Below, in pieces: positions 1,317-20,906 of a DNA stretch of 20,906 bases. The position numbers and the translations under genes were made by a program. The DNA comes from Macrostomum lignano (lineage: Eukaryota), in the NCBI GenBank assembly GCA_002269645.1, contig NIVC01005215.1, positions 1 to 20,906 of the forward strand, given 5' to 3'. The stretch's first letter is position 1, and every line of letters begins with the position of its first letter. The notes beneath the pieces are model-generated. The model made no database searches and was not told the DNA's origin. It worked only from the letters and a program-made list of their open reading frames with translations.

Positions 1317-1403
1317 AGGGTTCCACTGGCTGACAGAGAGAGGGTTCCACTAGCTGACTGAGAGAGGGTTCCACTAGCTGACAGAGAGAGGGTTCCACTA
1401 GCT

Positions 1404-1489
<86 letters not shown>

Positions 1490-1507
1490 TCCACTAGCTG
1501 ACAGAGA

Positions 1508-1545
<38 letters not shown>

Positions 1546-1647
1546 TCCACTAGTTCACAGAGAGGGTTCCACTAGCTGACAGAGAGAGGGTTCCACTAGC
1601 TGACAGAGAGGGTTCCACTAGCTGACAGAGAGAGGGTTCCACTAGCT

Positions 1648-1681
<34 letters not shown>

Positions 1682-1715
1682 TCCACTAGCTGACAGAGAG
1701 AGGGTTCCATTAGCT

Positions 1716-1755
<40 letters not shown>

Positions 1756-1789
1756 TCCACTAGCTGACAGAGAGAGGGTTCCACTAGCT

Positions 1790-1829
<40 letters not shown>

Positions 1830-1886
1830 CCACTAGCTGACAGAGAGAGGGTTCCACTAGCTGACAGAGAGAGGGTTCCACTAGCT

Positions 1887-1930
<44 letters not shown>

Positions 1931-1964
1931 TCCACTAGCTGACAGAGAGAGGGTTCCACTAGCT

Positions 1965-2004
<40 letters not shown>

Positions 2005-2140
2005 CACTAGCTGACAGGGAGAGTTCCACTAGCTGACAGTTCCACTAGCTGACAGAGAGAGAGGGTTCCACTAGCTGACAGAGAGAGGGTTCCACTAGCT
2101 GACAGAGAGAGGGTTCCACTAGCTGACAGAAGAGGGTTCC
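1317..2140. repeat. Compound satellite: GGGTTCCACTAGCTGACA units joined by variable-length (GA)n tracts
   Basis: The constant 18-mer is repeated more than 20 times with GA runs of variable length. The array ends at the Polinton terminus. Confidence 0.95.
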
Positions 2141-2445
2141 AGTAGTATAGAAAAAGACGCTTCTAGACCCAGAGCACTTTTTTAATGACCGTTTTAAGGG
2201 TCTAGAGGGGGGACACGGGGGGTAAATAAAAAAACACATCTAAACACCCTTAACACATCTAATCACCCATAATCACCCCTAACAATAAAAATCATTCCCA
2301 ACACTTCCAAACACTCCCCAACACCCCCTCGCGTCCCCCCTCTTAAGACCTTAAAACGGCCATTAAAATAAGGTCTGATCTGTAAGCGTCTTTTTCTATA
2401 CTACTACTCTATAACCCCTTGCCCGCGCCGCAGGCGCGAAGGGTC
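2141..2445 (+). repeat. Left terminal inverted repeat (305 bp)
   Basis: Reverse complement of 19546-19851 with 7 differences by manual alignment. Starts AGTAGTATAGAAAAAGACGC. Confidence 0.95.
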
Positions 2446-2819
2446 ACAAAAGAGTTTAAACTGAGTCATGGTAATAGTAACACTCAACAAAAAATTACTC
2501 TCATAGCCACTATTGGCTAGCTTGCAAAATCTTGCCGTAGCAGGAATTGAACGCCCACTCAGCCATCCAACTCTATAAAAACCACAGCCATCAACCCAGT
2601 TCTAGCTCATCTCTCAGGAAGAAGAAGACAGGCTCCGCGCGTCACAAGTAAAATGGGGTGCCCACCATCAATGAATAAGTTTTTAACAAATCGTCCAGAA
2701 AAATTCTGGACGTCCAGAAAAAAATGACTCAATGCAGTATATACACCATCTTGGGTTGAAAAATATTCTTTTGTGTGTTCTCGTATTCTTTTTTTCTGTT
2801 ACTAAAAATAGAACAAAAA

Positions 2820-3218
2820 ATGACACACGTTACACATGTGCAAAATATAAATGAGTATCAGGTAGGAGATCCAATTGAATACCGAGGTGAGGGACTTTTT
2901 GATTTGGTTGGAACAGCAGCAAATTTTGTTAAAGACAATATGGGGCTTATAGGGCAAGCTGGCTCTGCAGCAGGCTCTATAACAAATGCTGTAAAAGGAG
3001 GAATTGAAGCAGCTAGAGCGGCAGAAGAACTAAAGAAATTGAGAGATTTTAACGACACCCTCTCACAAATAAATGCAATAAAAGATTTAAAGCTGGCACA
3101 AGCCGCACAACCAACAGAAACCCCCACGAAAACCACGCCAATAAGTAATAAAGATATTCAGGATTTTAATAAAATGTTAAATACTATTAAAGGTGGAAAA
3201 GGATTAAAGAAATTTTAA
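2820..3218 (+). CDS. Small Gly/Ala-rich putative virion protein with adenain-type GxG/GG motifs (132 aa)
   Basis: Start chosen at the AAAAATG at 2820. Contains YRGEG and IKGGKG, then a predicted amphipathic and coiled-coil segment. Function is inferred. Confidence 0.6.
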   Translation: MTHVTHVQNINEYQVGDPIEYRGEGLFDLVGTAANFVKDNMGLIGQAGSAAGSITNAVKGGIEAARAAEELKKLRDFNDTLSQINAIKDLKLAQAAQPTETPTKTTPISNKDIQDFNKMLNTIKGGKGLKKF

Positions 3219-3228
3219 CAATATAAAA

Positions 3229-4275
3229 ATGGACTCAGTTAATGATGATGAAAACCGGTTATATTTTATAGGAGAAATTGTAGATACCTTAAATCTTGAT
3301 GATAATAAGCAAACCCACACAATGTTAAAAAGATTGGATCGATTAGGTAAAAAGTTTGACTACGACATCGATACATTTAAACTCGCAGCAAAATATGCAC
3401 AAGAAGGAAGGCCAATATCCTTTAAGAATCGCGGCAGAAATTATAGGTTGACAGACTCCGATGTGAAATTTTTAATGGAGACTCACACTAAAAAGGACGG
3501 CGGATTACTACCCATTCTACCGCTTCTTTTAGGACTTGGCGCAGCTGGAGCAGTCGGTTTAGCCGGAAAAAGAATTCATGATAATGTAAAACAGCTAGGA
3601 GAGTTAAGAGCGAAACAGGGGGGAATCTTGCCCCTTGCAGCTTTGCTCCCAATAATTTTTGCAGGAATTGGAGCAGCTGGAGGAGTTGCTGGCGGAGCAG
3701 CTGGAATTGCAAAAGCAGTAAATGACAAAAAAGCTGCGGACGAAAAAGCTAAAAGAGAGGCCGAATTTCAAAGACAGCAAATAACGCAGGACGCACAATT
3801 TAAACAAAAACTTATCGATACAATTAATAGTAGTTCAGCAACAGCCGAGCAAAAAAGAAATGCAGAAGCTAGGTTATCAGCTGGAAAAGGTTTACTCTTG
3901 CAAGGAACAAATCACGGGAATGGTTTGGTACTAAAAGGAACAACCCAAGGAAGTGGAGTTGTCGCAGATAAACTACATGAATTTGGCCAAACTTTAGAAA
4001 AAACGGGTGAGAAAGCTAAAGGATTTTTTGACAATATTGGATCCAATTTTAGACCAGCTGTTCAGAAATTTTTACTAAGTTAGGAAAAGATTTTAATATC
4101 ATTGAAAAACACGACGGAAGCGGATTATATCTCGAAATGAGACCAAAAGCAGGTTCAGGAATTTTCTTAAATTCAAACGTTATGGGCAATGGATTGCTAT
4201 TACCAAAAGCAGATCTCGAATAGGCTCCTGGGGGAGGGTCTGGACACCAAAAACGCAAAATTAAAAAATCAATAA
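3229..4275 (+). CDS. Adenovirus pX-like membrane-active precursor (two GG-[IL]LP hydrophobic segments; repeated GxG motifs), two compensating frameshifts
   Basis: DGGLLPILPLLLGLG and QGGILPLAALLPIIFAGIG resemble adenovirus pX (RGGILPLLIPLIAAAIG). The frame continues after a T-run slip at about 4070 (KLGKDF...GSGLYL...GSGIFL...GNGLLL) and an A-run slip at about 4206 (LLGEGL), reaching TAA at 4273-4275. Confidence 0.6.
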
Positions 4276-4306
4276 TTCAAACATTATATAAATTTTATTC
4301 TATAAA

Positions 4307-7300
4307 ATGGAAGCAATTTTAGCTCAAATCGACAACCCTGAACTTAGAGCACAATTAATAGCTCAAATCGATGCACAACGAATTGCCGATAGGGCTGAAA
4401 TAGAAGCAAGAATTAGGGCAGAAAATGAGATACGTTTAGAAAGACAATTAAATGATATTGATAACCCCAACCACAAGGACAAAATGGAGCTGAAGTAATA
4501 TATATAGATATAGATATAAATACAAATTATAAAGAATATTTTAAACAAATGAAAGATAAATTAAAGACCATATTAAACAATTATACTATAAGGCCAAATA
4601 ACAAACGACAGCCAATTAAGTATAAAATAGAAGTTGAAACAGAATTTAAAAAACCAAATATTCTTAATGCAAATTCAGAAATTGAAGTAATAAATAACTT
4701 TTCACAAGAATCATATAAAACATTATTATCAATGGGAAATTACAACAATCAATTCGATCAAATAGAAGCTGAGTTTGATGAATGGATAGATAAGATGACA
4801 GAAAACGGATCTGGGTTTATATTTGTATCCTGTAATTCAGCAATAGTAAAGATTGCACCTATAGAAATTCTTAAAGGACGATCACATATGAAGCTCAAAT
4901 TTAAATCACCTATGATTATAAATCCAGACAATAAAGATAATAAATGTTTATTATGGTGTTTATTAATTCATAAATATCACAATCAAGTAGAATCACACAT
5001 TAATAAAATATATAATTATAGACAATATGAGGATGAAATAATAATGAAAAACATATCATACCCAGTAGCAATAGATGATATATATAAGATTGAAAAAATG
5101 AATGGTTTAAATATTAATGTGTTTACAATTGAAGAACCAAAAGATCTAGAAGAAATTTTAACCGATCCAGAATGGTATAAGAAAAGGTGTTATCTTGTTA
5201 AGCCAGCAACTGATATAACAGCACCAGATCAAATCGATCTTTTGTACATGCAGCGCGAAAATGAAACACATTATATATACATAAAAGATATTAGTTCTTT
5301 TTTAAGAGAAAATAGAAATAGATATCCACTATGTAGAAATTGTTTTACATTTAAAAAGGATGAAACAGCTCTTAAAAACCACCAACGATTTTGTTTAGAT
5401 CACAAATTTACTAATGCTATAATGCCAGCATCTGAAGATGCAACCCTAAAGTTCCAACAACATTATATGGCAGTTAAAAAACCAATAGTAATATATGCTG
5501 ATTTTGAAGCAACAAATGTTCCCTTAAAAGAATCACAGACGGCATCTGATGATGGGAATGCACAAAAAAATTGGCACAACAGTTTCCGAATAGTTATTGT
5601 ATATATGTACACTCTGTAGCTGATCATATATTTAAATCAAGGATGATTACTTACCACGGTAATGATGCAGCTAAGCACATGGCAGAATCATTAGTAAATG
5701 TATTTGAATATATTCAAAATCAATATGATAAATTATCAAAAAATATTAATATGACAAATAAGGATAGAGACAATTATAAAAATGCAACAAATTGTTTTAT
5801 GTGCAAAAGACATTTAAGTAAGAATAATAAGATACGAGAACATTGTCATCTAACAGGAAATTATCGAGGGGCAGCATGTAGATCATGTAATGCAAAAGAA
5901 GGAAAAGGATGTAAGGAAATACCAGTATTTTTTCATAATGGTTCCGGATATGATTTTCATTTCTTAGTTCGAGAATTGCTTCATTTAGGAAAGGATGAAT
6001 ATGAAATAAATATATTACCTAAAACATCAGAAAATTACATATCAATAACATATGGTAAGAAATACTCCCATCTAGTTTTTCTAGATTCCTTGAGATTCTT
6101 ATCAACATCTTTAGCAAATGTTGTTTCATCATTAGTTCCAAAACCATGGGATTTAGAAATAGTAAAGAAAAACTTTCCAATACTATTGAATCGTTTCAAA
6201 AAGAAAAACTATCCGAGGAAGAACTAATGCTATTAACTCGTAAGGGCATCTATCCATATGAATATGTAACATCTGAAGACGTATTTTTTCATACCGAATT
6301 ACCCCCATAGAAAAGTTTTATTCAACATTATCACAAACAAATATAAGTGAATCGGATTATGAACACGCTCAAAAAGTATGGAAATACTTTAATTGTAAAA
6401 CATTTAAAGATTATCATAATCTATATCTTAAAGCAGATGTTCTCCTATTAGCTGATGCATTTGAAAACTTTAGGAATCATACATATGAGAATTTTAAAAT
6501 TGATCCCGCATATTGTTTCAGTGCACCGGGATTAACATGGGCTTGTGGTTTGAAACATACAGATGTTAAGATTGATTTACTAACTGATCATGATATGTTG
6601 TTAATGATTGAGAGAGGAATTCGCGGCGGATTCTCGGGTGTACTAGGAGATAGATATACTAAAGTAAATAATAAATATCTACCAAATTATAATAAAAAAG
6701 AAAAATCATCATATGTATTATATCTAGATGCAAACAATTTATACGGTGGTTGTATGAAACAAAAATTACCAATAGCTGATTTCCAATGGGAAGATGACCC
6801 CGATTATTACAAAAATATTCCCGAAGGAAGGGGCTGTATCGTAGAAGTGGATTTGCAATATACTCGGGAAGCAAAAGCAAAAACATATAAATATCCTTTA
6901 GCTCCAGAGCATTGTTCAGTTAATGAAGATGATTTATCACAAACACAAAAAGATTATCTTAAAGCAGATAATGCAAAACATCTAGCAACAAAAAAATTAA
7001 TATTAAATTTACATGATAAGAAAAACTATGTAGTGCATTATAAGCTTCTACAATTTTATGAAAAGCAGGGATTAAAAGTGTCTAAAGTACATCGAACAAT
7101 ATCGTTTATTGAGGAAGATTGGTTAGCTAAATATATTGACTTTAATTCAAATCAGAGACAGATGTCAAAAACAAATTTTGAGAAAGATTATTGGAAATTA
7201 ATGAATAATGCTTTTTATGGAAAAACGGTTGAAAATATTAGAGATAGAACCCAATTCCATTTAGAAAAGGATATTGATAAAGCAAAGAAATATTTCTCAA

Positions 7301-8254
7301 AACCTAACTTTAAAGACTTTATAAAATTTGATGATAACTTTATGGGTATTCATATGAGAAATAAAACAACAAAATTTCTTAAACCAATATTTATTGGAAT
7401 GGTTGTTTTAGATTATGCAAAGCTGGTAATGTATGAATATTATTATGATGTTATAAATAAAACATGGCCAGATAACTATCCAATATATGCAGACACCGAC
7501 AGTTTGGTATTTAAGGTTGAAACAGAGGATCGGGCAAAGCCGCGAACCAAAGGTTCGATGTCTATAAAGATATGGAAAAAATTAAGGATACATTGGATAC
7601 CTCCGACTATCCGGATAACCATCCTTTAAAATCAGATCAAAATAAAAAAGTTGTACTTAAAATGAAAGATGAATTAAATAGCAAAATCATAACCGAGTTT
7701 ATAGCAATAAGATCAAAATGCTATGCATTTAAGTTTTAGGACAGGAGGGAGAGGTAAAAAAAATAAAAGGGGTATCAAGAGCAGCAGTAAAAAAGATAAC
7801 ATTTGATGATTATAAAAACGTACTTTTAGATTACCTTAATACAATTGAAAATTATCATGCTCCACAATATCGATTAAATTCAGATAAGCATCAGATGTTT
7901 GTCATCGAGACAGATAAAAAAACATTAAGTCCATTTGATGATAAAAGATATTTAGATGATAAAATTAAAACATATCCATATGGTTTAAAAGAAGAGATAA
8001 AAAATATGATAAAAGATAAAAAACAAAAAGAAGATATAATAAGTAAATATAATGAATACAAAGCGGCAATAAATAATTATTATTACGATTGTGATTGTGA
8101 ATCCGAATGTGATTGTGAATATAATACATTTCTAGAATATGAAAAAGATATAGATAATTATTATTCAACATTTCCAAAAGAACTTAAAAAATTAAATAAG
8201 GAAAAAGTCTTGAATAACTGGAAGAGATTAACAGAAAAATTACTTATCGGGTAA
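4307..8254 (+). CDS. POLB: Protein-primed family B DNA polymerase (about 6 single-base frameshifts)
   Basis: ExoI IVIYADFEA, EndoVII-like CFMC..EHCHLTGNYRGAACRSCN, ExoII FFHNGSGYDFHF, KGIYPYEY, ExoIII YLKADVLLLADAFENFR, motif A YLDANNLYG, motif B KLMNNAFYGK, motif C YADTDS and LSPFDDKRY. Frameshifts at about 4466, 5567, 6195, 6304, 7541 and 7735 join track ORFs 4307, 4549, 5571, 6550 and 7895. Confidence 0.95.
7529..7559. repeat. Double-hairpin element copy A, inside pPolB
   Basis: AT-CGGGC AAA GC(C)CG-CGAACC AAA GGTTCG-AT interrupts the ...ETED/VYKDM... segment just after YADTDS. Confidence 0.8.
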
Positions 8255-8293
8255 AAAACTAAAGCATGTAATTGTTTAAGCATAATATCCATT

Positions 8294-8590
8294 TCATTTC
8301 ATATATATTGAGCCAATTTCCTCACAGTCGTCAGGGTAACTTAAACAATCCTTTATTTTTTTCCTAAGTTTTTTTATTTTTCTAACCAATCTATCTATTT
8401 CAATTTCAATTACTATTTCAGCATAAACAATATCTTGTCTTAAAAAACGTTTTCTTTTATCTATCTCATATCGGATGGGAAACATATCGTCCCCATACTC
8501 ATGATATTTCTGAGATATAATTATATTTATTTTTTTATTAATATCATTAAGTTCACGCTCTTTAGTGATAAGGATTTTTATCGTATCCAT
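8294..8590 (-). CDS. Hypothetical protein (98 aa, helical/coiled-coil)
   Basis: Intact ORF with AAAATG start context; no recognised motif. Confidence 0.6.
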   Translation of the reverse strand: MDTIKILITKERELNDINKKINIIISQKYHEYGDDMFPIRYEIDKRKRFLRQDIVYAEIVIEIEIDRLVRKIKKLRKKIKDCLSYPDDCEEIGSIYMK

Positions 8591-8605
8591 TTTCTTATAA
8601 AAAAT

Positions 8606-8938
8606 TTAGTCTTCGTCGTCATCCTCCCAAACAGCCGCCAATTTTACAGTCCTATCACTCTTTTTATTATTTGTTTGTTTTAGTTTAAATTGCAATCCAC
8701 CCTCGTTGCAGTATTTCATAACAAACGCTTTAGGTTTATTAATAACTAAAACAGGAAAATTTTTAACATCATCTCCGCTTAGACATAAAATTTTTTGCCC
8801 ATCTAATTGTAAAAATATTGATTGAAGCCCAATAAATTTAACCTGTCTCAAACATATAATATTATATTCTTTATTCTCCAACATATTGGGTGTGAGATAA
8901 TTAATCACATTAGAATCGGTTTTGAACCAGCTCTCCAT
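8606..8938 (-). CDS. Hypothetical beta-rich protein with acidic tail (possible OB-fold ssDNA-binding protein)
   Basis: Intact 110-aa ORF with AAAAATG start and a C-terminal WEDDDED. The fold is a guess. Confidence 0.55.
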   Translation of the reverse strand: MESWFKTDSNVINYLTPNMLENKEYNIICLRQVKFIGLQSIFLQLDGQKILCLSGDDVKNFPVLVINKPKAFVMKYCNEGGLQFKLKQTNNKKSDRTVKLAAVWEDDDED

Positions 8939-8964
8939 TTTTAATCTAAAAAAATAACAAAAAA

Positions 8965-9447
8965 ATGAAAGACATTTATGTTTGTAATAAATGTAATGTG
9001 ACTATGCACAGAGGGCAAACAGCAAACGGAGATATATATCATATGTGTTATTCATGTTCTAAAATATATCAATTTGAAAAAACAAAAAAGATTGAAAACT
9101 CATATTACTATTTTAAAAACACAATTTTAAGAAATCTTACAAGAGACATTTCTGATCCAATTTTAATTCCCGGAAATAATGTTTATTTATATAATAACTT
9201 TTTCCATTTAAATAAAGGAAAGGGATTAAGTTCGAAAGACTCCGAAAGGATTTTAATTTTAGTTGGATATTATTTCAATTTTCTTATTCGAGAGAATACA
9301 AAGTTTATAAGGATAGGTAACATACCTAACGAAATGTTATTGAAAAAGTCATTGGAATTTTTATGTATTGATAAAAAATTTAAACCTAGGATCAGAAGAG
9401 AGTTACCACTTTGGGAAGAATATATAACATATGCATTAAAAAACTAA
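8965..9447 (+). CDS. Hypothetical protein with N-terminal Zn-ribbon (CNKC-x17-CYSC)
   Basis: Intact 160-aa ORF with two CxxC pairs. Confidence 0.65.
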   Translation: MKDIYVCNKCNVTMHRGQTANGDIYHMCYSCSKIYQFEKTKKIENSYYYFKNTILRNLTRDISDPILIPGNNVYLYNNFFHLNKGKGLSSKDSERILILVGYYFNFLIRENTKFIRIGNIPNEMLLKKSLEFLCIDKKFKPRIRRELPLWEEYITYALKN

Positions 9448-10099
9448 ACAACCTGAAGTTCTACAGCACTTCCTGACCGCGGGCTTTGTGCCCCAGTAGC
9501 AATAGTTTCAGGTTCGTAAATGCCTAATGTTTCTATCGGTGGAGCTTTGGGTTTATCGAGTCTCAACTCTTTTAATTCCATATCGGTAAAAGTTTCAACA
9601 TCTAAAATTCTATTTCTATCTTTTAAATATTTTTCATATAATTCAACCGCGGTTGATAATTCATGAATCGTTATCTCTCCGTCATCCAATATTTTTTGCA
9701 CATATAAATATAATTGATTTTTATATTGCTTGCAACATCTCTTAATGATTTATATTTTTCCTTTCTTTTTTTAAGATATAATTTAATTGCTAAAAGTATT
9801 GATAAGTTCCTGATCAATTCAAAACCTGATATTGAGCCAATTGAAATACCTAAAAATAATTGAGATAAATTAAGAGTTGGAATAGATTGTAAAATACCTA
9901 AAACGATTACACATAACATTGATAAGCTTCCAAATCCAATATTGAAAAAGTCCATATTTCTTATATGGTTTGAAACTCTTCTTACTTTTTTAGCATATAA
10001 ATCATAATCATAGTTAATACGATCAACATTACTTAACATCTGACCTTTACGTTGGTTGAACCGGTCGCGTTCCCATTTATCTGCTTCAGATACCGACAT
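9444..10099 (-). CDS. Putative two-TM membrane protein with C-terminal KILDDGEITxxE motif (frameshift at about 9700)
   Basis: Track ORFs 9671-10099 and 9444-9701 join at a TATATGTG slip. Two hydrophobic segments are followed by a basic run (KKRKEK). Confidence 0.6.
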
Positions 10100-10409
10100 T
10101 CTCGTCTATTTTTAATAGCACCAAAATGAATTCCCCGCTCTTTGGGATTTGTCCCGAGCTCAATAGGTATTGTATTGGAGTTATTCTTTCTTTTTTCTCC
10201 CATTTAAATCCTATTTTCCAAAACTCTTGAAGTATAATATGATTTTTTAATAACTTAATTAATTCTTGAAGCTTCTTATTATCCTGAACATTTACAGTAC
10301 TAAATAAAAATTTGGTATGAGATTTGAATGTTTTTATATTTGATTCTTGTTTAGGAATAGGAATAATAACATTATTTTGCCGCATCGATGGAGTTCTACT
10401 AAAAGCCAT
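10086..10409 (-). CDS. Hypothetical protein (107 aa, starting MAFSRTPS)
   Basis: TATAAAATG start at 10409. The longer track ORF overlaps the end of the fibre gene. Confidence 0.5.
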   Translation of the reverse strand: MAFSRTPSMRQNNVIIPIPKQESNIKTFKSHTKFLFSTVNVQDNKKLQELIKLLKNHIILQEFWKIGFKWEKKERITPIQYLLSSGQIPKSGEFILVLLKIDENVGI

Positions 10410-10440
10410 TTTATATAGAAATATTTTATATATAAATATT

Positions 10441-12341
10441 TTATATTTGAGTAGGAGGTTTTTCCAAATAAGCAGTAGAGGGAAAAACATAACCAAACGA
10501 CGTACTACCACATACAACTGCACCACGAATAAAATGTGCAGCATCCGCTCCACCAGTTCGAGCACCAAAACCCATAAGGGTTCCAGATTTATCTAAAGTT
10601 CCCCAAGTTCCACTATCATATGTGAAAACGTTCTGTCCAATGAGGGTAAAAGAATCACCAGCAACATTGTATGACTGTAATCGGTACCAAACCCTTTGAT
10701 TTAAAATATTAACTTCAAATAAATGCCAATGCCGTTATCAATATTAGCATAGGCTACAGTTTGATCCGCATCACTACTAACATCGTTACGAACCGTAGAT
10801 CCGTCTGATTTTTTATTACTCCAAACAACTCCAAACCTATCAGTCCAGCATATATTTTGAAAATGTGTGAAATTGAATTGTAAAGCACCACTTACTCCAG
10901 AAGTTTCACGAGTAATTCTAGCGCCGTTTTGATAATCGATATAAGAAGCGTCACCAATTAAAGAACCGACTGGATATATATCTCCGGCGGTTGTTGGATT
11001 TTGATATCCAGACCAATTGCAAATTACTGGTTCGAACAAGGCCGCATCAATAGCAGGTATTCCATCCAATTTATTTTTATCGCTTCCAGACATTCTACCA
11101 TTTGATGTTGGAGTAGCTAGCTGATCTACGTACGCTCGCGGAACTGCAGAAAGTATTTGAGTTGGCCAATTAAGATCTTGAATTTCAACACGGTGTTCAA
11201 ATAATTGTATTTGACGAACCTCGATAGGTTGTGTACCGGTACCACCAGTTGGGAAGAATACGCTATAATATTTCCAAAAATTAGTCGTTAAATTAGATAG
11301 AGCAAATGATGTTGCTTGAACTGGTGATCCCGACGTAGTTAATGTCGTCCATGAATCGGTAGCAACATTTTTTGCGCGAACCGACCACCCGAGGGTATCT
11401 CAATTGTTTCACTGCCTGTAATTCTTAATTCAAATATTCTTCTATTATAACCTAAAAATTCAAATTGAATTTCCATATTGGTTGTGGTTCCGGTATTTGG
11501 TGACCATTGTGTCGCAAGGCTTCCATCTCCAACTCGAAAAGCTGTGTTGCCATTTTCAGATGCTGTAAGAACAACATCAGGATTTGAAGTATTTGATGTA
11601 AGCGGCGTGGTAAAAATATCGGCGTCGGTTGCATTAGCTCGCTCGTTTACTTGGCCTAGAGTTATCGAGTCTGCGTTCTCTGTTCCAAATAATAAATTTG
11701 TTAATTTAAAATTATTCATATTAATATTACCACTACGAGTGGCAACTTGATTATCGACATAGTTCTTATCAACCACTGAATCACTAGTTGTAATTGAAAC
11801 ATTTATAATTCGGTTGTTGCTCATATCTAGGTTTCCGGTTGCGGTGGTTTGAACATAACGTGAATCAGAATCAGTTCGAGAATAAGAATCAGTTACATCT
11901 CTTTTTAAATTTAATCCATTATCAACTTCGGTTTTGGTATAAGAATCGGCTACGTTCCGTTTCAAATTTAATGAATTATCAACTTCGGTTTTGGTATAAG
12001 AATCGGCTGTATTGCGTTTTAAATTTAATGAATTATCAACTTCGGTTTTGGTATAAGAATCGGCTGTATTGCGTTTTAAATTTAATGAATTATCAACTTC
12101 GGTTTTGGTATAGGAATCGGCTACGTTCCGTTTCAGATTTAGTGAATCATCTATTTGAGTTTTGGTATAGGAATCTGCAACATTTCTTTTTAAATTTAGT
12201 TTATATCAACTTCACTTTTTTTATAACCTTCATCTCATTAATATATCGATTATCTCCAAATGTAACACTTATTCCACCAGATGTGCCACCACCACCACTA
12301 CTTGTTGTTCCGTTCCATGAGGGTGTTCCAGAAAATAACAT
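10441..12341 (-). CDS. Fibre-like adhesin: YTKTEVD repeats, YadA-stalk-like motifs, F5/8-type-C-like domain, L-type lectin-like C-terminal domain (3 frameshifts)
   Basis: Starts MLFSGTPSW at 12341. Contains 19-aa NLKRNxADSYTKTEVDNSL repeats; LDMSNNRIINV..DSVVDKNYVD; PLTSNTS..AFRVGDG..QW..DSWTTL..YY; GRMSGSDKNKLDGI; and DNGIWHLFEV and GFGARTGG..HFI. Slips at about 12200, 11385 and 10734; stop at 10441-10443. Confidence 0.7.
11860..12225 (-). repeat. 57-bp coding tandem repeat (about 6.5 units) in the fibre gene
   Basis: Directly visible; two central units are identical. Confidence 0.9.
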
Positions 12342-12405
12342 TTTTTACTGTCTATTTTATAGAGTCTAAAATAGTCTTAAATACTTCGGGGTTTAACTTC
12401 GAGCT

Positions 12406-12795
12406 TCATTCGAAAGTTTTATATAAAAAATACAACGCCGCTTGCCCGCAATAACTTTTATCAAAGGTTTGAAATTGTTCGTGATGATCTCCACATAAAC
12501 GATTTTTAGTATGATTAAATTTATCTTTTATTTCCTGTAACGGAGGAAGCGCGTATGAATCAAAAAAATAAACAAGTTTTGGTTTTGAATAAACTGCTGA
12601 CCAATGAACACCATTTTCTTTTGTTGTTTCAATATTAACAATGAAAGATCCATATTGTGGTAAGTCTTTGATCTCATCTCGCATAACACATCTGAATGGT
12701 TTTATTTTTAACTGCCTCGCCCAATTTGTTAATTCGATATTGCTTGTTGTGTCCGTTCCATATCTTTGTTTAAAATCATCCCACGTCATGGTCAT
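12406..12795 (-). CDS. PRO: Adenain-family cysteine protease
   Basis: IVN..NGVHWSAV, YFFDSYA and FQ..DKSYCGQ give the His/Asp/Gln/Cys catalytic set. Intact ORF. Confidence 0.92.
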   Translation of the reverse strand: MTMTWDDFKQRYGTDTTSNIELTNWARQLKIKPFRCVMRDEIKDLPQYGSFIVNIETTKENGVHWSAVYSKPKLVYFFDSYALPPLQEIKDKFNHTKNRLCGDHHEQFQTFDKSYCGQAALYFLYKTFE

Positions 12796-12796
12796 T

Positions 12797-13006
12797 TTAT
12801 GTTCCTGAAAAACTCTTGGTTTTAGTTAGTTTCGTAGGTGTGGGTTTTAACAATTCCTTTCTTATTTTATCAGCTTGTAACTGCCTTAATTTTGCTAGTT
12901 CTAGTTCGTAATTATCTTCAGCTTTTTTAACTTTTTCTGATTGTTTTTTTATTAAATTATTATTATTATCGTGCTTTGCACGCGAACATGTTGTTCGATT
13001 ACCCAT
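12797..13006 (-). CDS. Small basic coiled-coil protein (69 aa; MG N-terminus)
   Basis: AAAAATG start; the stop abuts the adenain start. Confidence 0.5.
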   Translation of the reverse strand: MGNRTTCSRAKHDNNNNLIKKQSEKVKKAEDNYELELAKLRQLQADKIRKELLKPTPTKLTKTKSFSGT

Positions 13007-13016
13007 TTTTACAGTA

Positions 13017-13801
13017 CTAAACCTGTTTTATACGTAAAATTATTGTTATTGACTGCCCACCAAAACTTATTAATCTATCGCTTTCATCTACAATCCTAAT
13101 ATAAATTGATTGAACATTATATTGATTTAATGGGTAATATATTGGGGTTTGAGGTGAACAATCATTTTCTCTCCAATTGGAACAGCAAGAAATGGGATTG
13201 AATAAATAATTCCACGTTGAACCAAAACTCCGTTATCGTCTGTTATATAACCACCGTTTGAAATGTCGGTTGTTATATTAATTGTATTTACTCCACCCTC
13301 TATATTTCCAACTGTATCACCGGTGCTTGATGTGGTAACTATTCGGGAATTAAATCCAAGTATGGTTCTGAGTGAATTTGCAATTGTGAAATCAACCTGA
13401 TATCCGGATCCTAGTGATAGTGTGAATCTGCCAGACGGTAAATCAACACCTATAACAATTGCTCCTGCTACCCAATCACCATTAGTTGTTAATTCTCCTT
13501 CTATATAAGCATTCAAATCAGTATAGCTATACGCTCCTGGGTTAACGCTAAATGTTGTCCAATTGGCTCCGGAATCTTTAGAATATCTAAATTGATTATT
13601 TGTTGCATTAATTAATTGAGGCATGTTGAAAACCGAAAATAGTATTAAACCTATTTGATAACTTAGGCTTTGATCAAGTTGTAATGGATCGCGCAATTGA
13701 ATCCGTTGCTCGCTGGTTGTCATTATAAACTGTAATGTTGTACTAAATTTTGAATTAGTTCGATCTACCAATTGTTTTATAGTATTTAAATTTGTAGTCA
13801 T
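13017..13801 (-). CDS. PX: Minor capsid protein (penton, single jelly-roll); frameshift at about 13160
   Basis: NNQFRY, PGAYS, LRTILGF and VNTINITTDI, with a restored C-terminus PIYYPLN..IYIRIVDESDRLISFGGQSITIILRIKQV. Confidence 0.85.
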
Positions 13802-14635
13802 TTTTATAGTGGGAAATTAATCGACGAAGTCGCGTGCTATGCACGATCTCTTCTTCCTCATTATCTTCTTTTATCAAATTTGTTAAAATTCTATGTTTCC
13901 TTTCTAACCTCGGATTGATATAAATATGTTTGTATTGGCTATCATCCCAAATTTTTTTACACATACTTTTAAATGGTTTTGCATCCAATCCGGGATTAAA
14001 TCTAGCGTGTATATTTTGTAAATCATAATTATCTAAATCAAACATTACACAACAACTTGCATTCTTTTTTATAATCGATTCTAATTCTCTAAAGGATTGA
14101 GTAAGATAAAAAGCTCCAATTCCATCTCCTCTACCACTAACAAAAATTTCCTTTTGCAATTCTTGATCACCGTCATTAATACAATCATCAAAAATAATTA
14201 GTGTTTTATCATGTTTTGGAATTTGATCATAGGCTAATCGGGTTGATACTCTAACAGTTGGGGCTCGATCGGACGAAGTCCGCGACCCTTCGGGGCGATC
14301 GGTGATGTTTTCTGGCTGTTGTGCCATTGTTTTACATAAATCCTCAATGTCTGCTAGATTAAATCGCGGTTCGTCATCATCCTCATATTGCTCATATGCT
14401 CTTAACATTCTAAACAAGACATCTTTTTTTAATTTGTTTTTTAATCCATGTTTAAGAAATTCATAATATTTTATTCTAGGTTTATTAGTATAAATTATTA
14501 AATTATTATAGTCTAACATTCCATCTGTTGTTAATAAATCGTAAACAAAGTGTGTTTTTCCTTTACCTGATCCTCCGATTACTAAACAAAGAAAAGGATC
14601 ATTTGGAAATATTTATTGTGTTTTGCCTTTACCAT
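13755..14635 (-). CDS. ATP: A32/FtsK-HerA-like genome-packaging ATPase; frameshift at about 14612
   Basis: Start MVKAKHNK at 14635. Walker A LVIGGSGKGKT lies upstream of the track ORF; Walker B LIIFDDC; SGRGDG..FYLTQS. Confidence 0.92.
13820..13847. repeat. Double-hairpin element copy B, at the ATPase 3' end
   Basis: AT-CGAC GAA GTCG-CGTGC TAT GCACG-AT. Confidence 0.8.
14268..14299. repeat. Double-hairpin element copy C, in-frame inside the ATPase
   Basis: AT-CGGAC GAA GTCCG-CGACCC TTC GGGGCG-AT; encodes RPEGSRTSSD in an uninterrupted part of the ORF. Confidence 0.8.
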
Positions 14636-16140
14636 TTTTAAAGAAATAATTTAAATAGGCGCGACGGTCGGAGACCTGCACTGCGCGAACAATCGTGCCA
14701 TCAGCTTTAGCAATTGACATATATTCCTCTAGAAACAATACGTGGGCGTCAAGTGCCTGATTACCGGTTTTATTAATCTCTAACATATAATTAAGTCCAA
14801 TATTGGCTACGTTTTCTTTCTGTGCCGTTAGATCATAAACAACCACTGGATGAATGTTTAGAAACTCTGTGGGTGTGTACTGAGGGACGGCATACGCTTC
14901 ATTTTTGCATAATCTTGATAATATTTTATAAAATCATTAACATTATTATTTGCTATATTTAAATTTAGGGGGTCTTTAACCGGATAATATTGATCATCAA
15001 CCTGCAGGCGGATATTCTGAACATTAAACTCGTTAATAGCTGCAGCCGCATTGTCTGTTGCGGTGGCTGCTTGTTCTGCTATGGCACCGGATTGAAGCCA
15101 ATATAAATCCCCATTTGCTCTTTTACTCCTTCTATTTGTTATCTTAAACCAAACAAAAATATATCTCACCCGACGTTTTGATGTCAGTATTTGCCACTGG
15201 AATGAATCCTGGTTATTATTAATGGTTCGCATAAAATGTCGACGATTCAAATAAAATATTTCCTGATCATGCGTTAACTGATTATCGATGTGTTTTAAAA
15301 GTGGGGCTGTTACCTCAATAGTTGGTACGACTAATTGAATTGAATCTATACGAACTGCTATATCGGTTGAAATTGAGGTTCCATAAAGTATCCTAGGCTG
15401 ATATCCACCAGATATTTGCAACTGTATCCCAAATTTTAATCCTTTCCATACCCGATTTGGTGAGAAAACCCAAATAGTGGAAAGATTGAAAAGTCCTGCT
15501 CATATGCTGTTGCTGTGGTTAAAACCGCGACTGGGAATTTATTCTGACGATCTATAAAACCAGTATTAATATCTTTTGTATTAGTCATAGTGGTTACAAC
15601 TGGAACTATGTTTGTATTAAGGTAAACAATTAGCGCTGCAGTATCTGCACCGGCTGCGTTTTGTACATTAGGGAAAACTACTGCTTGACCGTTACCTTTA
15701 TCCGGCATCCACCCAACATTATCACCAACTTGTTTTGATAAATAAGTATAATTTAAATGTTTCAAAACTCCATTAATCTCTGCGGGGTTTGATGATGTCT
15801 CAACCTCAGCACCATTAACAGTTAGTTGAGCTTGGGAAAAACATTTATAAAACCAATCATTTTCTATTATTATTCCGGATCGATCTGCGATATCTCCGGC
15901 TGCAAGAGCAGTTCCATCATTTCTAGTATACAACCATCTAACGCGGAAAAACGCATTTTTCATATCCAATATAGTGTTGGTTGCGCCGATGTCAAAAGTT
16001 ACCGTTCCAGTAGTAAAGTTATTTGAATTATCACTTGTTGGTAGGGTATAATTTAAATCTCTTGCTCTGACCTCATTAATATACTGTCGGTGCTTTTTGA
16101 AATGAAATTTATCACTCCACATAGTTTTTGTTTCAGCCAT
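14613..16140 (-). CDS. PY: Major capsid protein (double jelly-roll); frameshifts at about 15457 and 14903
   Basis: VTFDI, ILDMKNAF, FSQAQLTVNGAEVE, PLFGF/NRVWKGLKFGIQL, RVRYIFVWF, NIRLQVDDQYYP and PVVVYDLT. Joins track ORFs 15436, 14858 and 14613. Confidence 0.88.
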
Positions 16141-16174
16141 TTTTTTAAGTTAAAAAAGTTTTTTATGTTAAAAA

Positions 16175-16845
16175 ATGAGTCAATTTATGGACGTTGATGG
16201 AGAGTTAGCGATTTATAAAGAGAAGCAAAGATATTCTGATTTTGTTAGAAATTTACAAAAAAGAAAGTTAGGAATACAATTAGCGGGTGAAAGATTTGCT
16301 GCTCCTTTTGTTAATCCTATTACTGGGAAAATTAGTGAACTAGAAAAAACAGATAAAGATCTTCTGGAAAAAATTGCTAAAAATACGGAGCCAAAAGAGG
16401 ATGAAATTTTGGATGAGCCGCCTGCTTATGAGACTGATCAAGCAATATTTAGAGTTGCAGAAATTAGACGTGAAGAGATTAGGGGTGGAGTTGAACAATA
16501 TCCGAGACCTGCACCAACTAGTATTGCTGTGACAGATTTAGGTGGTGGTAATTATCGAATTGGTAACGTTGTTAAAGATCGAAATGAACTATATAGAGAA
16601 TTGGGCGGAGCATTTAATATTATTACGAACCCTAGGGTAAAATTTAACCCGATTTATATACTAGGGATGAATTAATAAGTGCTAGAATTTTTTATGATGA
16701 GTTAGGAGGAGCTGTTAAAAATACCAGCTTGTATAAATGGATTGTTAATTCTATAAATAACAAACCAGCTGTTGGTGATGGATTTAAAACACCGCGAAAA
16801 CTTGTTTTAGCTGCTGCGAAAGCTGCTGGACATACTGGAGTTTAA
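16175..16845 (+). CDS. Polinton conserved protein, PZ-like C-terminal LxLxxAAxxAGHT motif, with a PPxY motif; frameshift at about 16650
   Basis: The alternative frame continues YTRDELIS...VGDGFKTPRKLVLAAAKAAGHTGV to TAA at 16843-16845. Contains LDEPPAYE and IRGG. The gene is divergent from the MCP. Confidence 0.55.
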
Positions 16846-16873
16846 TTAATTGTTAAATTTATTTTTTTATAAA

Positions 16874-17377
16874 ATGGATGAAACAATAAAAGACCACCTT
16901 TGTAAGCCTATTTATGATAAAGTTGGTTCTGACAGAATACTAAATAAAATATTTCAAGATGAATTAATAATTGCAAACCGTATTAAAACAATACAAATGA
17001 GACTTGGATCTCTTTATGAATTATTAGCTATTAAACATTTTGGTTTTGAAAAAGTAAATAAAATTGATTTAATTCATACAGAAAGAAAAGTTGCGTTAGA
17101 GTTAAAATCTTCTGATAACACAGATAATTCATCAAGTCGATTTAGAAATATTCAAAAGTTATTAGAATTTAAATATGTTAATCCCGAATTTGATTTATAT
17201 TATATTTGCATTAATAATACTACTAAAAACCCCGTACAAAAAGTATTTGATAATGGAGTTACCTTGTTAACTGGGGAATTTGCTTTAAATTTTTTATATG
17301 GTGACCAATATTTAGAAATTATTAAATTGATAGAAACATGTTTTTTAAACATTAAAAATGAACCAAATAGTATTTGA
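16874..17377 (+). CDS. PD-(D/E)xK type II restriction-endonuclease-like protein, Eco47II/Sau96I family-like (167 aa)
   Basis: RIKTIQMRLGSLYE, KIDLI, ALELKSSDNTDNSSS (as I recall, the family pattern is E-x-K-x3-N-T-x-N-S) and LLTGEFALNFLYG. Intact ORF; no methyltransferase motif was found in the element. Confidence 0.7.
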   Translation: MDETIKDHLCKPIYDKVGSDRILNKIFQDELIIANRIKTIQMRLGSLYELLAIKHFGFEKVNKIDLIHTERKVALELKSSDNTDNSSSRFRNIQKLLEFKYVNPEFDLYYICINNTTKNPVQKVFDNGVTLLTGEFALNFLYGDQYLEIIKLIETCFLNIKNEPNSI

Positions 17378-18962
17378 AGGAGGATTTTTAGATGTTCAAA
17401 AAGGATTAACAAGCTTACCACCAATATTTACTACTGGGAGGTATACGGGTGAGCTACACCTACCATCAATGAACTTCACAGGTTAACCCGTGGCCTGAGT
17501 GAGGAAGGCAATGTCCTTGCTAGTCACTATTTGTGGCGACATCTCCAAATTGCGTGAAACCCGTCATACAGCTTCAAGTACCACTTCAATTGAGAAATCT
17601 TTTGAAGGAACAGAGGTAACTCCTCTTCCCAATCGGACTTCGTCCGCGAACCTATGGTTCGATGGTAAAAAGCTTGAAGACACGGTGGCAATGCGCAGCC
17701 AAGCTCCTAAGTATTTTAAATATAAGGAGAAGGTTCAGAGAGCAGACGGAGATGGGCGGTAATTATCGCCGCTTAAGGTGTGCTCCAGCCTCTTTCGAAA
17801 GATTGAGGGTAAACTACCCGGCACTCGCTTAGATTTGAGATTAAATCCTGATGACACCCAAAAGCCGATTCAATTCCCATAAATGGAATTGATTGGTTAG
17901 CATACTATCATGACTTAGCATACAGAGATGCTGATAAGAACACACCCGAGGAAGCATTAAGATTAAAACATGAAGCCGATCAAAAAATGATTCAAGGATT
18001 AGATAACTTGCAGGGATTATCGGTAGGTCAAAAATTAACTAGGTGGATGGTTAAAAAGATCTTGCAGTCTAAAGTTAAATTTGGTTTGGGAATTAATTAT
18101 AATCAACATGGAAATAATTGTGTTGAGTGTTTGTTGTTAAGTGGCGGCGGGTTAAGTTCTGATGAGGCAAAGATTCTTCATAAAGAATATCGAAAACCTA
18201 AATTTTATAGAAAAATCATGAACTTCAAAAAGAATGAAATTTGGTATGCTGATTTAATGTCGATGCCGAACGAAAGAGGATATAAATATATCTTAACCAT
18301 ATTAGATGGTTTTACTCGATACGCGTGGGCTGTTCCTTTAAAATCCAAAAAGGGAGAGGAGGTTGCTGCTGCTTTTAGAAGTCTTGGAGAAAAAAGTGAA
18401 AGGTTGTGTGTTGACGAAGGAAAAGAATTTTACAATCCTCACATGTATAAATTGTATCATTTTGAAAAAGGACAAGAAAGGAAAAAGGACGCGAATGGGG
18501 AGTATATTAATAAAATTTATTCTATTTATGGAGAGAGTAAAAACGCATTAATAGAAAGATTTAATAGAACTTTAGGTAAGAAATTATGGTTTCAGTTTAG
18601 TCTTAATGGTAACCAAAAATGGGTAAAAATATTACCAGACGTAGTGAAAGATTATAACAATTCATATCATTCGGCGATAAAGATGACTCCTCAACAAGCT
18701 TATAACAATCCTGAAAATGTTAGGGTTACTTTTGGAGATTTTGAAAAAAAGAAAAAAAGGTTTTAAGGTTGGTGATTCTGTTTATATCTATAAATGGAAA
18801 GATAAGTTTGAAAAGGGAAGAAAAGGATATTGGAAAATAAGTGAGAAATTTACCATCAGTAAAGTTTTAAATACAAATCCTACAACCTATATAATTGCTG
18901 ATAAGGATGGTGAAGAAATATTGGGTTCTTTTTATGAGAACCAGATAATGTCTGCGAACTAA
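17358..18962 (+). CDS. INT: PLA2-integrase fusion: parvovirus-type phospholipase A2 followed by RVE (DDE) integrase; split by a group I intron; frameshifts at about 17858 and 18762
   Basis: Exon 1 (17358-17483) ends GELHLPSMNFTG. Exon 2 from 17817 reads PGTRLDLRL..PINGIDWLAYYHDLAY..KHEADQKM and runs in frame into WYADLMSM, YILTILDGFTRY, VDEGKEF and IERFNRTL, with a C-terminal FKVGD..FEKG..GSFYENQI. Confidence 0.88.
17484..17816 (+). ncRNA. Group I self-splicing intron, IC1-like, 333 nt, no homing endonuclease ORF
   Basis: P1 CAGGU/GCCUG with U.G at the splice site; CUAGUC-P2.1-GGCGAC; P3 CAUCUCC (17540-17546)/GGAGAUG (17748-17754); P element AAAUUGCGUGAAA; Q element GCGCAGCCAAG; P7 GAGCA (17740-17744)/UGCUC (17781-17785); P8 GGCGGU/AUCGCC; P9 with GAAA loop. 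Removal restores FTG-PGT in frame. Confidence 0.92.
17632..17663. repeat. Double-hairpin element copy D, in the intron P5 extension
   Basis: AT-CGGAC TTC GTCCG-CGAACC TAT GGTTCG-AT; both stems are perfect. Confidence 0.85.
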
Positions 18963-18972
18963 GTTCAAACAG

Positions 18973-19197
18973 TTACTTAAGACAACATGGTAGTAAATTT
19001 TTTATTACAAACAAAAACAATATTATTACTATTATTGTTACTAATATTATTATTGACATTTGTTCAACTGTTATCAAACTTAAATTTTCATTAAGTTCAT
19101 TAATTGGAACATTTCCGATGTAGGAATAATTTACCTTCATTTTTTTATATATATTTTTCATAATAAACGTCGTTTCTGTTATAGAATAATAGTTCAT
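18973..19197 (-). CDS. Small single-TM protein (74 aa)
   Basis: AAAAATG start and a C-terminal hydrophobic stretch IIILVTIIVIILFLFVI. Confidence 0.5.
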   Translation of the reverse strand: MNYYSITETTFIMKNIYKKMKVNYSYIGNVPINELNENLSLITVEQMSIIILVTIIVIILFLFVIKNLLPCCLK

Positions 19198-19213
19198 TTT
19201 TTAAATATTTTTT

Positions 19214-19528
19214 TCACATAAAAATTTCACTTTCATTCTCTGAATCACTGGTTTCATATGAACTATTTGTTGATTCGGAATCTGTTGATCTAACCTCCCA
19301 ATCATCCGAATTTAAATAATCTCCAAGTTGAAATATTAACTCACCCTCTTGTTCTAAATCATACATCTCATCTAGCTCTAATGGATAAAGCTTTAGGTCA
19401 TGCTTGTCGTCATATTTTAAATAAACTTCATCAATTATTCCATTCAAAATATGTTGTTTTATTATCTCTGCATTTTTAGCAACAGTCTCAAAAGTATCAC
19501 TAACAGAAAAGGTGTAAACTCGGGTCAT
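19214..19528 (-). CDS. Acidic Ser-rich hypothetical protein (104 aa)
   Basis: Intact ORF starting just inside the right TIR, with AAAAATG context. Confidence 0.6.
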   Translation of the reverse strand: MTRVYTFSVSDTFETVAKNAEIIKQHILNGIIDEVYLKYDDKHDLKLYPLELDEMYDLEQEGELIFQLGDYLNSDDWEVRSTDSESTNSSYETSDSENESEIFM

Positions 19529-19545
19529 TTTTAGTAACAGAAAAA

Positions 19546-19851
19546 GACCCTTCGCGCCTGCGGCGCGGGCAAGGGGTTATAGAGTAGTAGTATAGAAAAA
19601 GACGCTTCTAGATCAGACCTTATTTTAATGGCCGTTTGTAAGGTCTTAAGAGGGGGGACGCGAGGGGAGTGTTGGGGAGTGTTTGGAAGTTTTGGGAATG
19701 ATTTTTATTGTTAGGGTGATTATGGGTGATTAGATGTGTTAAGGGTGTTTAGATGTGTTTTTTTATTTACCCCCCGTGTCCCCCCTCTAGACCCTTAAAA
19801 CGGTAATTAAAAAAGTGCTCTGGGTCTAGAAGCGTCTTTTTCTATACTACT
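19546..19851 (-). repeat. Right terminal inverted repeat (306 bp)
   Basis: Ends GCGTCTTTTTCTATACTACT and matches the left TIR inward to GACCC at 19546. Confidence 0.95.
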
Positions 19852-20906
19852 GTCCTCTGCCTGTCTTCAATAAGTATTTCCTGCACTCATTTTGCCTCAG
19901 AGTATTGGTTAGCGACTTCGATGAATGCTTTCAAGGCCAGCTAGGATTCAAGGCGAGCGGAAAGAAAGAATAATTTTCTTCCCACGAGCGATATGAGCAG
20001 CTCCCAGTGCCGTTTGCGTGACAATTCATCAAGGGTGCCGAATGCGTCAGTCAGTCTTTCAACCCGAATTTTTTTCGGCTGCTGCGGTCTTGGAAATGTA
20101 TGGGAAAATGGTTAAATATATAGAACAGGCCGTGTCAGAAAACTGGGATTTCAGCGGTTTAGCAGGATCAGAATGCGATGTCAATAATACTAGTGCAGAG
20201 GAAAACACAACACCGGAGATGTCCCAGGCACCTGATCTTTTAAAGTAGCATTCAGTTCAAACCGAGTAACTCCAAATTAAAAGGGGTAGGTCGACAAAAG
20301 GAGCGATACAAAGGTTAGTAGGTCGCTTAACCCTCGCAGAGGAACAGTGAGAGCAAACAGATTTTTAATATTCGAACGCGCTGAAGAGGCAGTGAATAAG
20401 GGAACTGAAAACCCGAGGCTGGTTGCGGCTGCCGATCTGATTAGCTGCATCAAGGGACTTGAGCAAAATCGGAGCTCATTTGCATGCTAGCTATGGCTCC
20501 TATAATTCCTTACAGCGCTTATACATGTAGTCGTAGATTTAGTCTCTAGAGACGCTGAAGTCAAGGGGTTCCGCGTGCCTCGACCCTTCCGCCCTCCAGG
20601 CTCTAAATGGCACCGTAATCCTACTGAGATTGGCATCTCAGGAATAAAAAACGCTGGTTTCCTAAAAAGCCTCGCCTTCAAAAGCTATTCAAGTCTGACA
20701 GAAGTGGTGCAGGTCTTTGGTTTGCTTTTGATGCGACCTACAAACCAACAGACAGCTTATATGTGCTTTATCTGGCTCATAATAAGTTCTGAATATGCAT
20801 GAATCAGAATGCCCACTATGATACCTTTCAACGGATGTTCCGCACTTCAGTGGGCCAACAATCGACGACTACGTGCTCATTCATCTGTTCGAGGATTCAT
20901 ACGAGA

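Follow-up and report, generated by a model that had tools for sequence, protein, structure and literature searches.

Mobile group I introns that carry an intron-encoded homing endonuclease are already known and have been reviewed (PMC3984707), as are PD-(D/E)xK homing endonucleases such as I-Ssp6803I (PMC6083498). Also known is collaborative homing, a proposal of 2009 as cited in PMC11296320 and PMC3984707. Group I introns have been counted in the Polinton-like viruses of Paulinella micropora, Rhodomonas lacustris and Desmodesmus (PMC12220804), and the Eco47II family of restriction enzymes has been placed in the PD-(D/E)xK superfamily (PMC3424549). The present analysis concerns a stretch of 20,906 nucleotides (nt) from Macrostomum lignano (contig NIVC01005215.1, assembly GCA_002269645.1), referred to here in its entirety as the window, and the Polinton/Maverick-type element that it contains. 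In this element, an open reading frame (ORF) for an Eco47II-family nuclease lies just upstream of a phospholipase A2-integrase gene that is split by a group I intron. Set beside related elements, the arrangement probably represents a mobile group I intron and Eco47II-type homing endonuclease system residing in the Polinton phospholipase-integrase gene.

The likeness to mobile group I introns lies in two features. In six relatives (L001-L006) the ORF occupies a peripheral loop between P2 and P3, and the insertion falls within the presumed target, in a conserved motif of an essential gene, such that intron-bearing alleles would be immune. Unlike those introns, the clade uses an enzyme of the type II restriction family Eco47II (PF09553), which belongs to no classical homing lineage; its target is apparently 5 base pairs (bp) long, and the carrier genome is purged of the site and the proteome of Gly-Pro. 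I-Ssp6803I shares the catalytic superfamily and is likewise encoded in a group I intron, but it produced no sequence or fold match in the Protein Data Bank profile and fold searches, and the target of the clade is presumably much shorter. With the bacterial Eco47II/Sau96I-type and EcoO109I systems (PMC3424549) the clade has in common a family sequence match, the PD-(D/E)xK motif and the EcoO109I fold. In contrast to them, the clade nuclease is short (~165 amino acids), its carrier is a eukaryotic virus-like element, and the window lacks a methyltransferase; protection would come from the absence of sites together with the intron.

The window also resembles collaborative homing in that its nuclease gene stands just outside an ORF-less intron that splits the presumed target and would serve that intron. 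The earlier note on this DNA had drawn this parallel. It describes the window anatomy well, but the layout is an exception nested inside an intron-encoded clade; it seems to be derived from an intron-encoded ancestor and not to be a precursor of one, and its carrier is a eukaryotic Polinton instead of a phage. Finally, the introns counted in PMC12220804 are also group I introns of Polinton-like elements and match the same Rfam model; unlike the window intron, they are reported from a short gene that lies upstream of the capsid gene and is unannotated, and they were linked to no nuclease, target or avoidance. The claim that such a partnership was undescribed therefore needs narrowing, since the introns themselves had been counted; the link to a nuclease had not been made there. 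Among the papers of the searched library that ranked highest for Eco47II together with Polinton, virophage, Maverick or giant-virus terms, none mentions Eco47II. What appears to be new is an Eco47II-family enzyme acting as a homing endonuclease, its 5-bp target, the purge of genome and proteome, and a series of states within one clade.

A nuclease gene and a group I intron at one Gly-Pro junction

The nuclease gene (16874-17377, + strand) is intact and free-standing and encodes 167 amino acids. As the earlier note had read it, the ORF is Eco47II-like and its last 20 nt overlap the phospholipase-integrase frame, which opens at the ATG at 17358. By itself, the window protein matches Pfam RE_Eco47II (PF09553) with an E value of 3.8e-4 and 20.6 bits. 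The same profile is matched by all ten aligned family members (best E 4e-7) and is precomputed on the database proteins P0003-P0005, P0013, P0016 and P0156 and on the nuclease gene of a further relative, L009. Judged from these profile matches, membership in the Eco47II family appears secure at the level of the family, while the single window sequence is sub-threshold. Homologues comprised nine proteins at 51-63% identity, 24 found by profile, and 285 representatives at E <= 1e-3 when all representative proteins were considered. Residues D65, E76 and K78 are invariant in the aligned family and constitute the PD-(D/E)xK signature.

An AlphaFold model of the window nuclease has an alpha/beta core (predicted local distance difference test 89; predicted template modelling score 0.80). 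Among solved structures, its best full-length fold match is EcoO109I, with a template modelling score of 0.63-0.69 and a probability of 1.0; other matches are restriction enzymes and McrC/DdmD nucleases. The site read by EcoO109I is seven bases long, with GGNCC in the middle. When the family profile was run against the sequences of the Protein Data Bank, it matched nothing, and neither the nuclease profile nor the integrase picked up a relative among viral contigs; a scan of JGI metagenomes added one locus. A type II restriction-modification system would have its cognate methyltransferase alongside. No methyltransferase domain was found among the 27 window ORFs, which agrees with the earlier description of the nuclease as methylase-less, and none occurs among the precomputed domains of the relatives' genes, a methylase fusion being found only on the giant-virus-like contig L012 considered below.

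Turning to the split gene, exon 1 (17358-17483, + strand) comprises 42 codons by translation and homology and ends in the Gly codon GGT (17481-17483). It is homologous to exon 1 of L005 and L006 and to the N-termini of intron-less proteins. The ORF-less group I intron follows (17484-17816, + strand), with bounds taken from homology with the six relatives. Exon 2 (17817-18962, + strand) starts with the Pro codon CCC (17817-17819) and encodes a phospholipase A2-like domain and an rve integrase core (Pfam Phospholip_A2_4 and rve; tblastn). The insertion is exactly between these two codons, inside a would-be GGNCC, as had been stated from the sequence alone. The match to Rfam model RF00028 lies at 17474-17807 and spans model positions 1-253, the full length; its 61.1 bits (E 5e-15) exceed the gathering score of 50. 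This match was obtained with permissive filters on a short stretch. The intron was missed by a scan of the whole window with default filters and the gathering threshold, and in L001-L003 the ORF-bearing introns escaped the permissive scan.

The P1 hairpin (17479-17497, + strand), placed by the Rfam alignment, contains the 5' splice site, with U17483 opposite G17493 in a pairing of C17479-U17483 with G17493-G17497. A C-G pair of P1 in the window, L005 and L006 is a U-A pair in L001-L003, and compensatory changes were found at 19 of 64 predicted core pairs; the ribozyme core has been kept with covariation. At its 3' end, the window intron lacks the canonical terminal signal, a terminal G that all six relatives possess, and this was counted as one defect. 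Inside the stretch matched by Rfam, another possible 3' splice site was considered and rejected on homology; it would keep the frame but add codons absent from every relative. In the P5/P6 region (~17633-17662), the window intron is also longer by an insert of ~30 nt that is absent from all six relatives. An ORF of 87 amino acids at 17499-17762 is a mere read-through of the ribozyme core.

When the 5' and 3' intron pieces of the relatives were aligned to the window intron separately, all of L001-L006 proved to have the same intron at the identical insertion site, with the nuclease ORF inside it. The order is constant, with exon 1 ending in GGT followed by P1-P2, the nuclease ORF, P3-P9, the terminal G, and exon 2 beginning CCN GGN ACN. 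Joining the exons yields GGT|CC in all six and, with the window, at 7 of 7 intron-bearing loci. An endonuclease ORF inside the intron, the mark of a mobile intron, is thus present in 6 of the 7 intron-bearing elements examined and absent from the window, the sole exception, which has the ORF directly upstream of exon 1 instead. The earlier note had envisaged an intron enlisted to shield a site from the nuclease. The partnership stands, but probably in the form of a classical mobile intron with its homing endonuclease and not of a recruited patch.

A neighbour-joining tree places the window nuclease among intron-encoded enzymes, as sister to the L005/L006 group; the intron-encoded P0148 branches much deeper. 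Since the window nuclease nests among intron-encoded ones, an intron-encoded arrangement probably preceded its free-standing state and the ORF-less intron. The region upstream of the window nuclease was searched for remnants of exon 1 or P1-P2, and none were found, only a short A-rich context before start codons. Such a context precedes the ATG of ordinary element genes as well as that of the intronic ORF (window 17343-17360; L001 9240-9253; L006 1010-1028; L004 147-162), and a start signal of its own is therefore possible for the intronic nuclease ORF.

One consequence for annotation was noted. Because the ribozyme core is open in one frame, gene callers append false C-terminal extensions to the nuclease in public protein sets. 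Intron-derived C-terminal tails were recognized on at least 11 database proteins (P0001-P0004, P0006, P0008, P0010-P0013 and P0148), exposing an artefact in which a translated ribozyme is fused onto a nuclease.

Avoidance of GGNCC and the intron-less relatives

The window contains a single GGNCC site, at 20852 in the host flank. Within the element (2140-19852) there is none, which upholds an earlier manual scan, against 15-21 expected (21 from a first-order and 16 from a second-order Markov model). Of 160 palindromic patterns, none is as strongly depleted in the element as GGNCC (P ~1e-9 to 1e-7). The relatives behave similarly. No site occurs in the 19.7 kilobases (kb) counted for L001; in L002 there are 11 in the first 1.3 kb, which is host flank, and none in the remaining 13.2 kb; the Polinton part of L003 has one, and a retroelement inserted in it has two. 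Pooling eight relatives gives 3 sites against 20 expected, and pooling nine elements gives 3 against ~35, two of the three being the Gly-Pro codons of intron-less relatives. For GGWCC the nine elements have 1 site against 28.9 expected (P ~1e-11), while CCWGG, a pattern of equal composition, is found 45 times against 45.8.

The avoidance extends to the proteins. Five clade elements encode 2 Gly-Pro dipeptides against 25.7 expected, both of them at the phospholipase site, while the reverse dipeptide, Pro-Gly, occurs 25 times in the same elements and Gly-Pro occurs 8 times against 11 in controls. Outside the clade, the pattern disappears. Pooled host flanks have 38 GGNCC sites against ~38 expected, and two distant, nuclease-less Polintons that carry the same phospholipase-integrase fusion have 13 against 10 (L010) and 16 against 18 (L011). 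These intron-less controls have GGTCC at the junction position, where both read GGT CCC. Avoidance throughout the host was considered and rejected; the unique part of the left flank at 721-1320 has no site against 2.9 expected, which is not significant, and the flanks of L002, L003, L007 and L008 are undepleted.

Together with the EcoO109I fold match, the clade-wide avoidance suggests that the putative target of the nuclease is GGNCC, or at least GGWCC. A pure GGWCC specificity fits poorly with the window, where GGSCC is absent against 4.6 expected, and with the near absence of Gly-Pro everywhere. As a separate observation, CCNGG occurs 7 times in the window element against 24-26 expected (P ~3e-5); the relatives are undepleted by the pooled CCWGG count, and a second avoidance signal specific to the window lineage is possible.

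Many phospholipase-integrase proteins are uninterrupted, and their junction is mostly Gly-Pro-Gly-Thr. The variants comprise three Gly-Ala-Gln, two Gly-Pro-Asn and one Gly-Leu-Asp. Three intron-less members of the clade are informative. L008 has a free-standing nuclease directly upstream of the gene, placed like that of the window (profile E 6e-20), reads Gly-Ala (GGA GCA) at the junction, and has neither an intron nor a GGNCC site in its Polinton part; this bears out the earlier note, which had advised looking for such a Gly-Pro substitution where a nuclease occurs without an intron. L007, whose available 12 kb yielded no nuclease, reads GGG CCA, and these Gly-Pro codons are the one GGNCC of its Polinton part. 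L009 encodes a distant member of the family (E 5e-13; PF09553) at another place in the element, and its Polinton part again has GGG CCA as the one GGNCC. The codon GGG accounts for ~3% of Gly codons in L007 and L009. The earlier note had regarded the site as unavoidable. Strictly it is avoidable, as relatives have Gly-Ala, Gly-Leu or the rare codon GGG at this position, and if the enzyme spares GGGCC, there is a synonymous way out as well.

Proposed homing and its alternatives

The proposed mechanism is as follows. A methylase-less, restriction-type nuclease of the Eco47II family would serve a group I intron as its homing endonuclease. In the uninterrupted gene, the Gly-Pro codons of a conserved phospholipase stretch spell the target GGT CCN, and the intron would split it as GGT|CC, leaving intron-bearing DNA immune. 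An allele that has GGTCC and no intron would be open to cleavage, and repair on the template of an intron-bearing copy would convert it. Because the target would be only five bases long, the purge would be genome-wide: selection would have removed all other copies from elements that meet the enzyme, down to the loss of Gly-Pro in their proteins. Intron-less lineages may persist through resistant alleles, one by Gly-Ala and two by the rare codon GGG. In the window, the nuclease gene would have left the intron for a position just upstream of exon 1, giving the layout of collaborative homing.

Several points weigh against this explanation. The 20.6 bits of the window protein fall below the curated Pfam threshold of 25.9, and the nuclease tree carries no support values. 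About ten elements were examined; they are related and hence not independent samples, and the GGNCC sites expected in each AT-rich relative are few (2-5). The cleavage specificity is deduced from fold and avoidance. In the relatives, GGSCC occurs 2 times against 2.4 expected; its depletion depends mostly on the window, and GGNCC and GGWCC are therefore indistinguishable as targets. Homing endonucleases normally have long targets, typically 14-40 bp, and a 5-bp cutter would hit host DNA about once per kilobase. L009 pairs a distant nuclease homologue with an uninterrupted GGGCC and has no methylase, a combination that the earlier note had held to be incompatible with its proposal. L009 is reconciled if its enzyme is inactive or spares GGGCC, for example through GGWCC specificity; sparing is the simplest reconciliation. 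L007 avoids GGNCC though no nuclease was found in the DNA available, and an external nuclease of the same family acting on it is possible.

A fuller version of the proposal is put forward more tentatively, as quite possible rather than probable. Here the methylase-less 5-bp enzyme would be active, the element would protect itself solely by erasing sites (in effect, a ban on Gly-Pro), and the one indispensable Gly-Pro would be kept by splitting its codons with the self-splicing intron that encodes the enzyme. The nuclease would then provide both homing drive and a weapon against competitors whose DNA has the site, and Gly-Ala and GGG would be resistant alleles of the kind met in gene drives.

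An alternative is that the avoidance is a defence against an outside nuclease of the same family, from the host or from the restriction-modification system of a giant virus parasitised by these elements, with the element's own nuclease and intron being secondary. A possible source is seen on contig L012 (assembly GCA_013573015.1), where a fusion of a 5-methylcytosine (m5C) methylase with an Eco47II-like nuclease (family profile E 2e-25) adjoins an RNA polymerase Rpb5-like gene. Since it adjoins such a gene, L012 looks like giant-virus DNA, and it is probably giant-virus-derived. The avoidance in L007 without a detected nuclease fits the same idea, and it has been proposed that the restriction systems of giant viruses exert pressure on Polinton-like viruses (PMC12220804). 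It is nonetheless an unlikely primary cause. The nuclease-carrying intron is placed exactly in the site, L010 comes from the same sample as L003, L007 and L008 and is undepleted, and the single GGGCC kept in L007 and L009 would still expose both to a GGNCC enzyme. The L012 fusion itself occupies 323-1951 and has 542 amino acids; its contig of 4.5 kb has three GGNCC sites and is undepleted. In the BFVD fold search, which gave no convincing full-length viral match, the top match was a 542-amino-acid uncharacterised protein of Heterosigma akashiwo virus 01.

Alternatively, the nuclease may be mainly a weapon against host or competitor DNA, a case of restriction without modification, with the intron recruited as a patch for a site that could not be removed. 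Targets would be plentiful, as host flanks have GGNCC about once per kilobase, and both the free-standing nucleases of L008 and the window and the lack of a methylase among the window ORFs agree with such a role. Yet the nuclease is intron-encoded in all the other intron-bearing elements, including on a basal branch, which is the signature of a selfish homing unit, and the Gly-Ala and GGG escapes imply that the intron is unnecessary for protection. As the main function, a weapon is accordingly doubtful. Both this and the outside-nuclease explanation are compatible with a homing system.

The last alternative is that the nuclease reads a homing target of the usual long kind in which the junction just happens to lie, with depletion due to an unrelated cause such as composition, mutation bias or chance. 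It is already disfavoured and very improbable: it has in its favour the general length of homing targets and the fact that other N-containing palindromes also fall below second-order Markov expectation (AGNCT, for example, 58 against 101), but GGNCC is depleted ~7- to 30-fold where other patterns are below 2-fold, CCWGG is undepleted in the pool, flanks and controls show no depletion, family and fold indicate GGNCC-reading enzymes, and Gly-Pro dipeptides are lost.

The carrier element and the meaning of the system

The Polinton/Maverick-type element (2140-19852, no strand assigned) is 17.7 kb long with 33% GC, in host DNA that is GC-rich and mostly tandem repeats. It was recognized by its terminal inverted repeats (TIRs), its protein-primed polymerase B (pPolB), rve, Endonuclease_7 and phospholipase A2 domains, and homologous genes in L001-L009. 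Its ORFs encode a pPolB to which an Endonuclease_7 domain belongs, together with an rve integrase core and a phospholipase A2-like domain that is weakly matched; the Pfam domains found were DNA_pol_B_2, rve and Endonuclease_7. ATPase, penton-like and protease genes are common to the element and to related loci with double-jelly-roll capsid genes. The element therefore has the polymerase, integrase, capsid and packaging genes and TIRs by which Polintons/Mavericks are defined.

The left TIR (2140-2445, no strand assigned) is 98-99% complementary to the right TIR (19546-19852, likewise), with which it pairs over ~306 nt, and it is itself a foldback. In each (2141-2405; 19586-19851), the outermost 27 nt recur inverted ~211 nt inward with 93-100% complementarity, and the ends of the element could form hairpins from these foldbacks. 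The left host flank (1-700, 1320-2130) consists of a ~20-nt unit over 700 nt and then a ~24-nt unit mixed with long GA microsatellites; the insertion point of the element is at the margin of the repeat array.

Several genes of the window copy are interrupted. The polymerase gene has at least 3-4 frame changes and at least one stop, the capsid region is broken into three ORFs, and the phospholipase-integrase gene is broken by two frame changes (tblastn frame count). With the defect at the 3' end of the intron, the copy looks inactive as judged from its sequence; since the TIRs are near-identical, some of the gene breaks could be assembly errors. The ribozyme had been called indispensable. As the copy appears degraded, that description suits the lineage and not the window locus.

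Further observations were made on the related contigs. In L001, two polymerase B genes with Endonuclease_7 (390-3416 and 5122-7863) are divergently oriented on one contig and may reflect two joined elements or an internal duplication. The same contig has a long, near-perfect hairpin at 8257-8390 that scores above threshold for the plant microRNA MIR7504 on both strands and is most likely an inverted repeat between two genes. In L003, a Ty3/gypsy-type retroelement (6343-9975) interrupts the Polinton in its capsid gene region. LINE-like (long interspersed nuclear element) and DDE transposase genes flank L007 (1732-6904); the host genomes are rich in mobile elements.

If the homing explanation is correct, a restriction enzyme would have become a homing endonuclease in a eukaryotic virus-like element, thereby linking two classes of selfish nucleases. 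A nuclease with a short target would have reshaped an entire genome, down to the amino-acid composition of the proteins it encodes. The clade would also offer a natural series, from a nuclease inside the intron, through a free-standing nuclease with an ORF-less intron and a free-standing nuclease with an amino-acid escape, to a synonymous escape, and this series would bear on how mobile introns and endonucleases become associated and separated. For Polinton-like viruses more broadly, it would provide a functional reading for the group I introns that have recently been counted in them.

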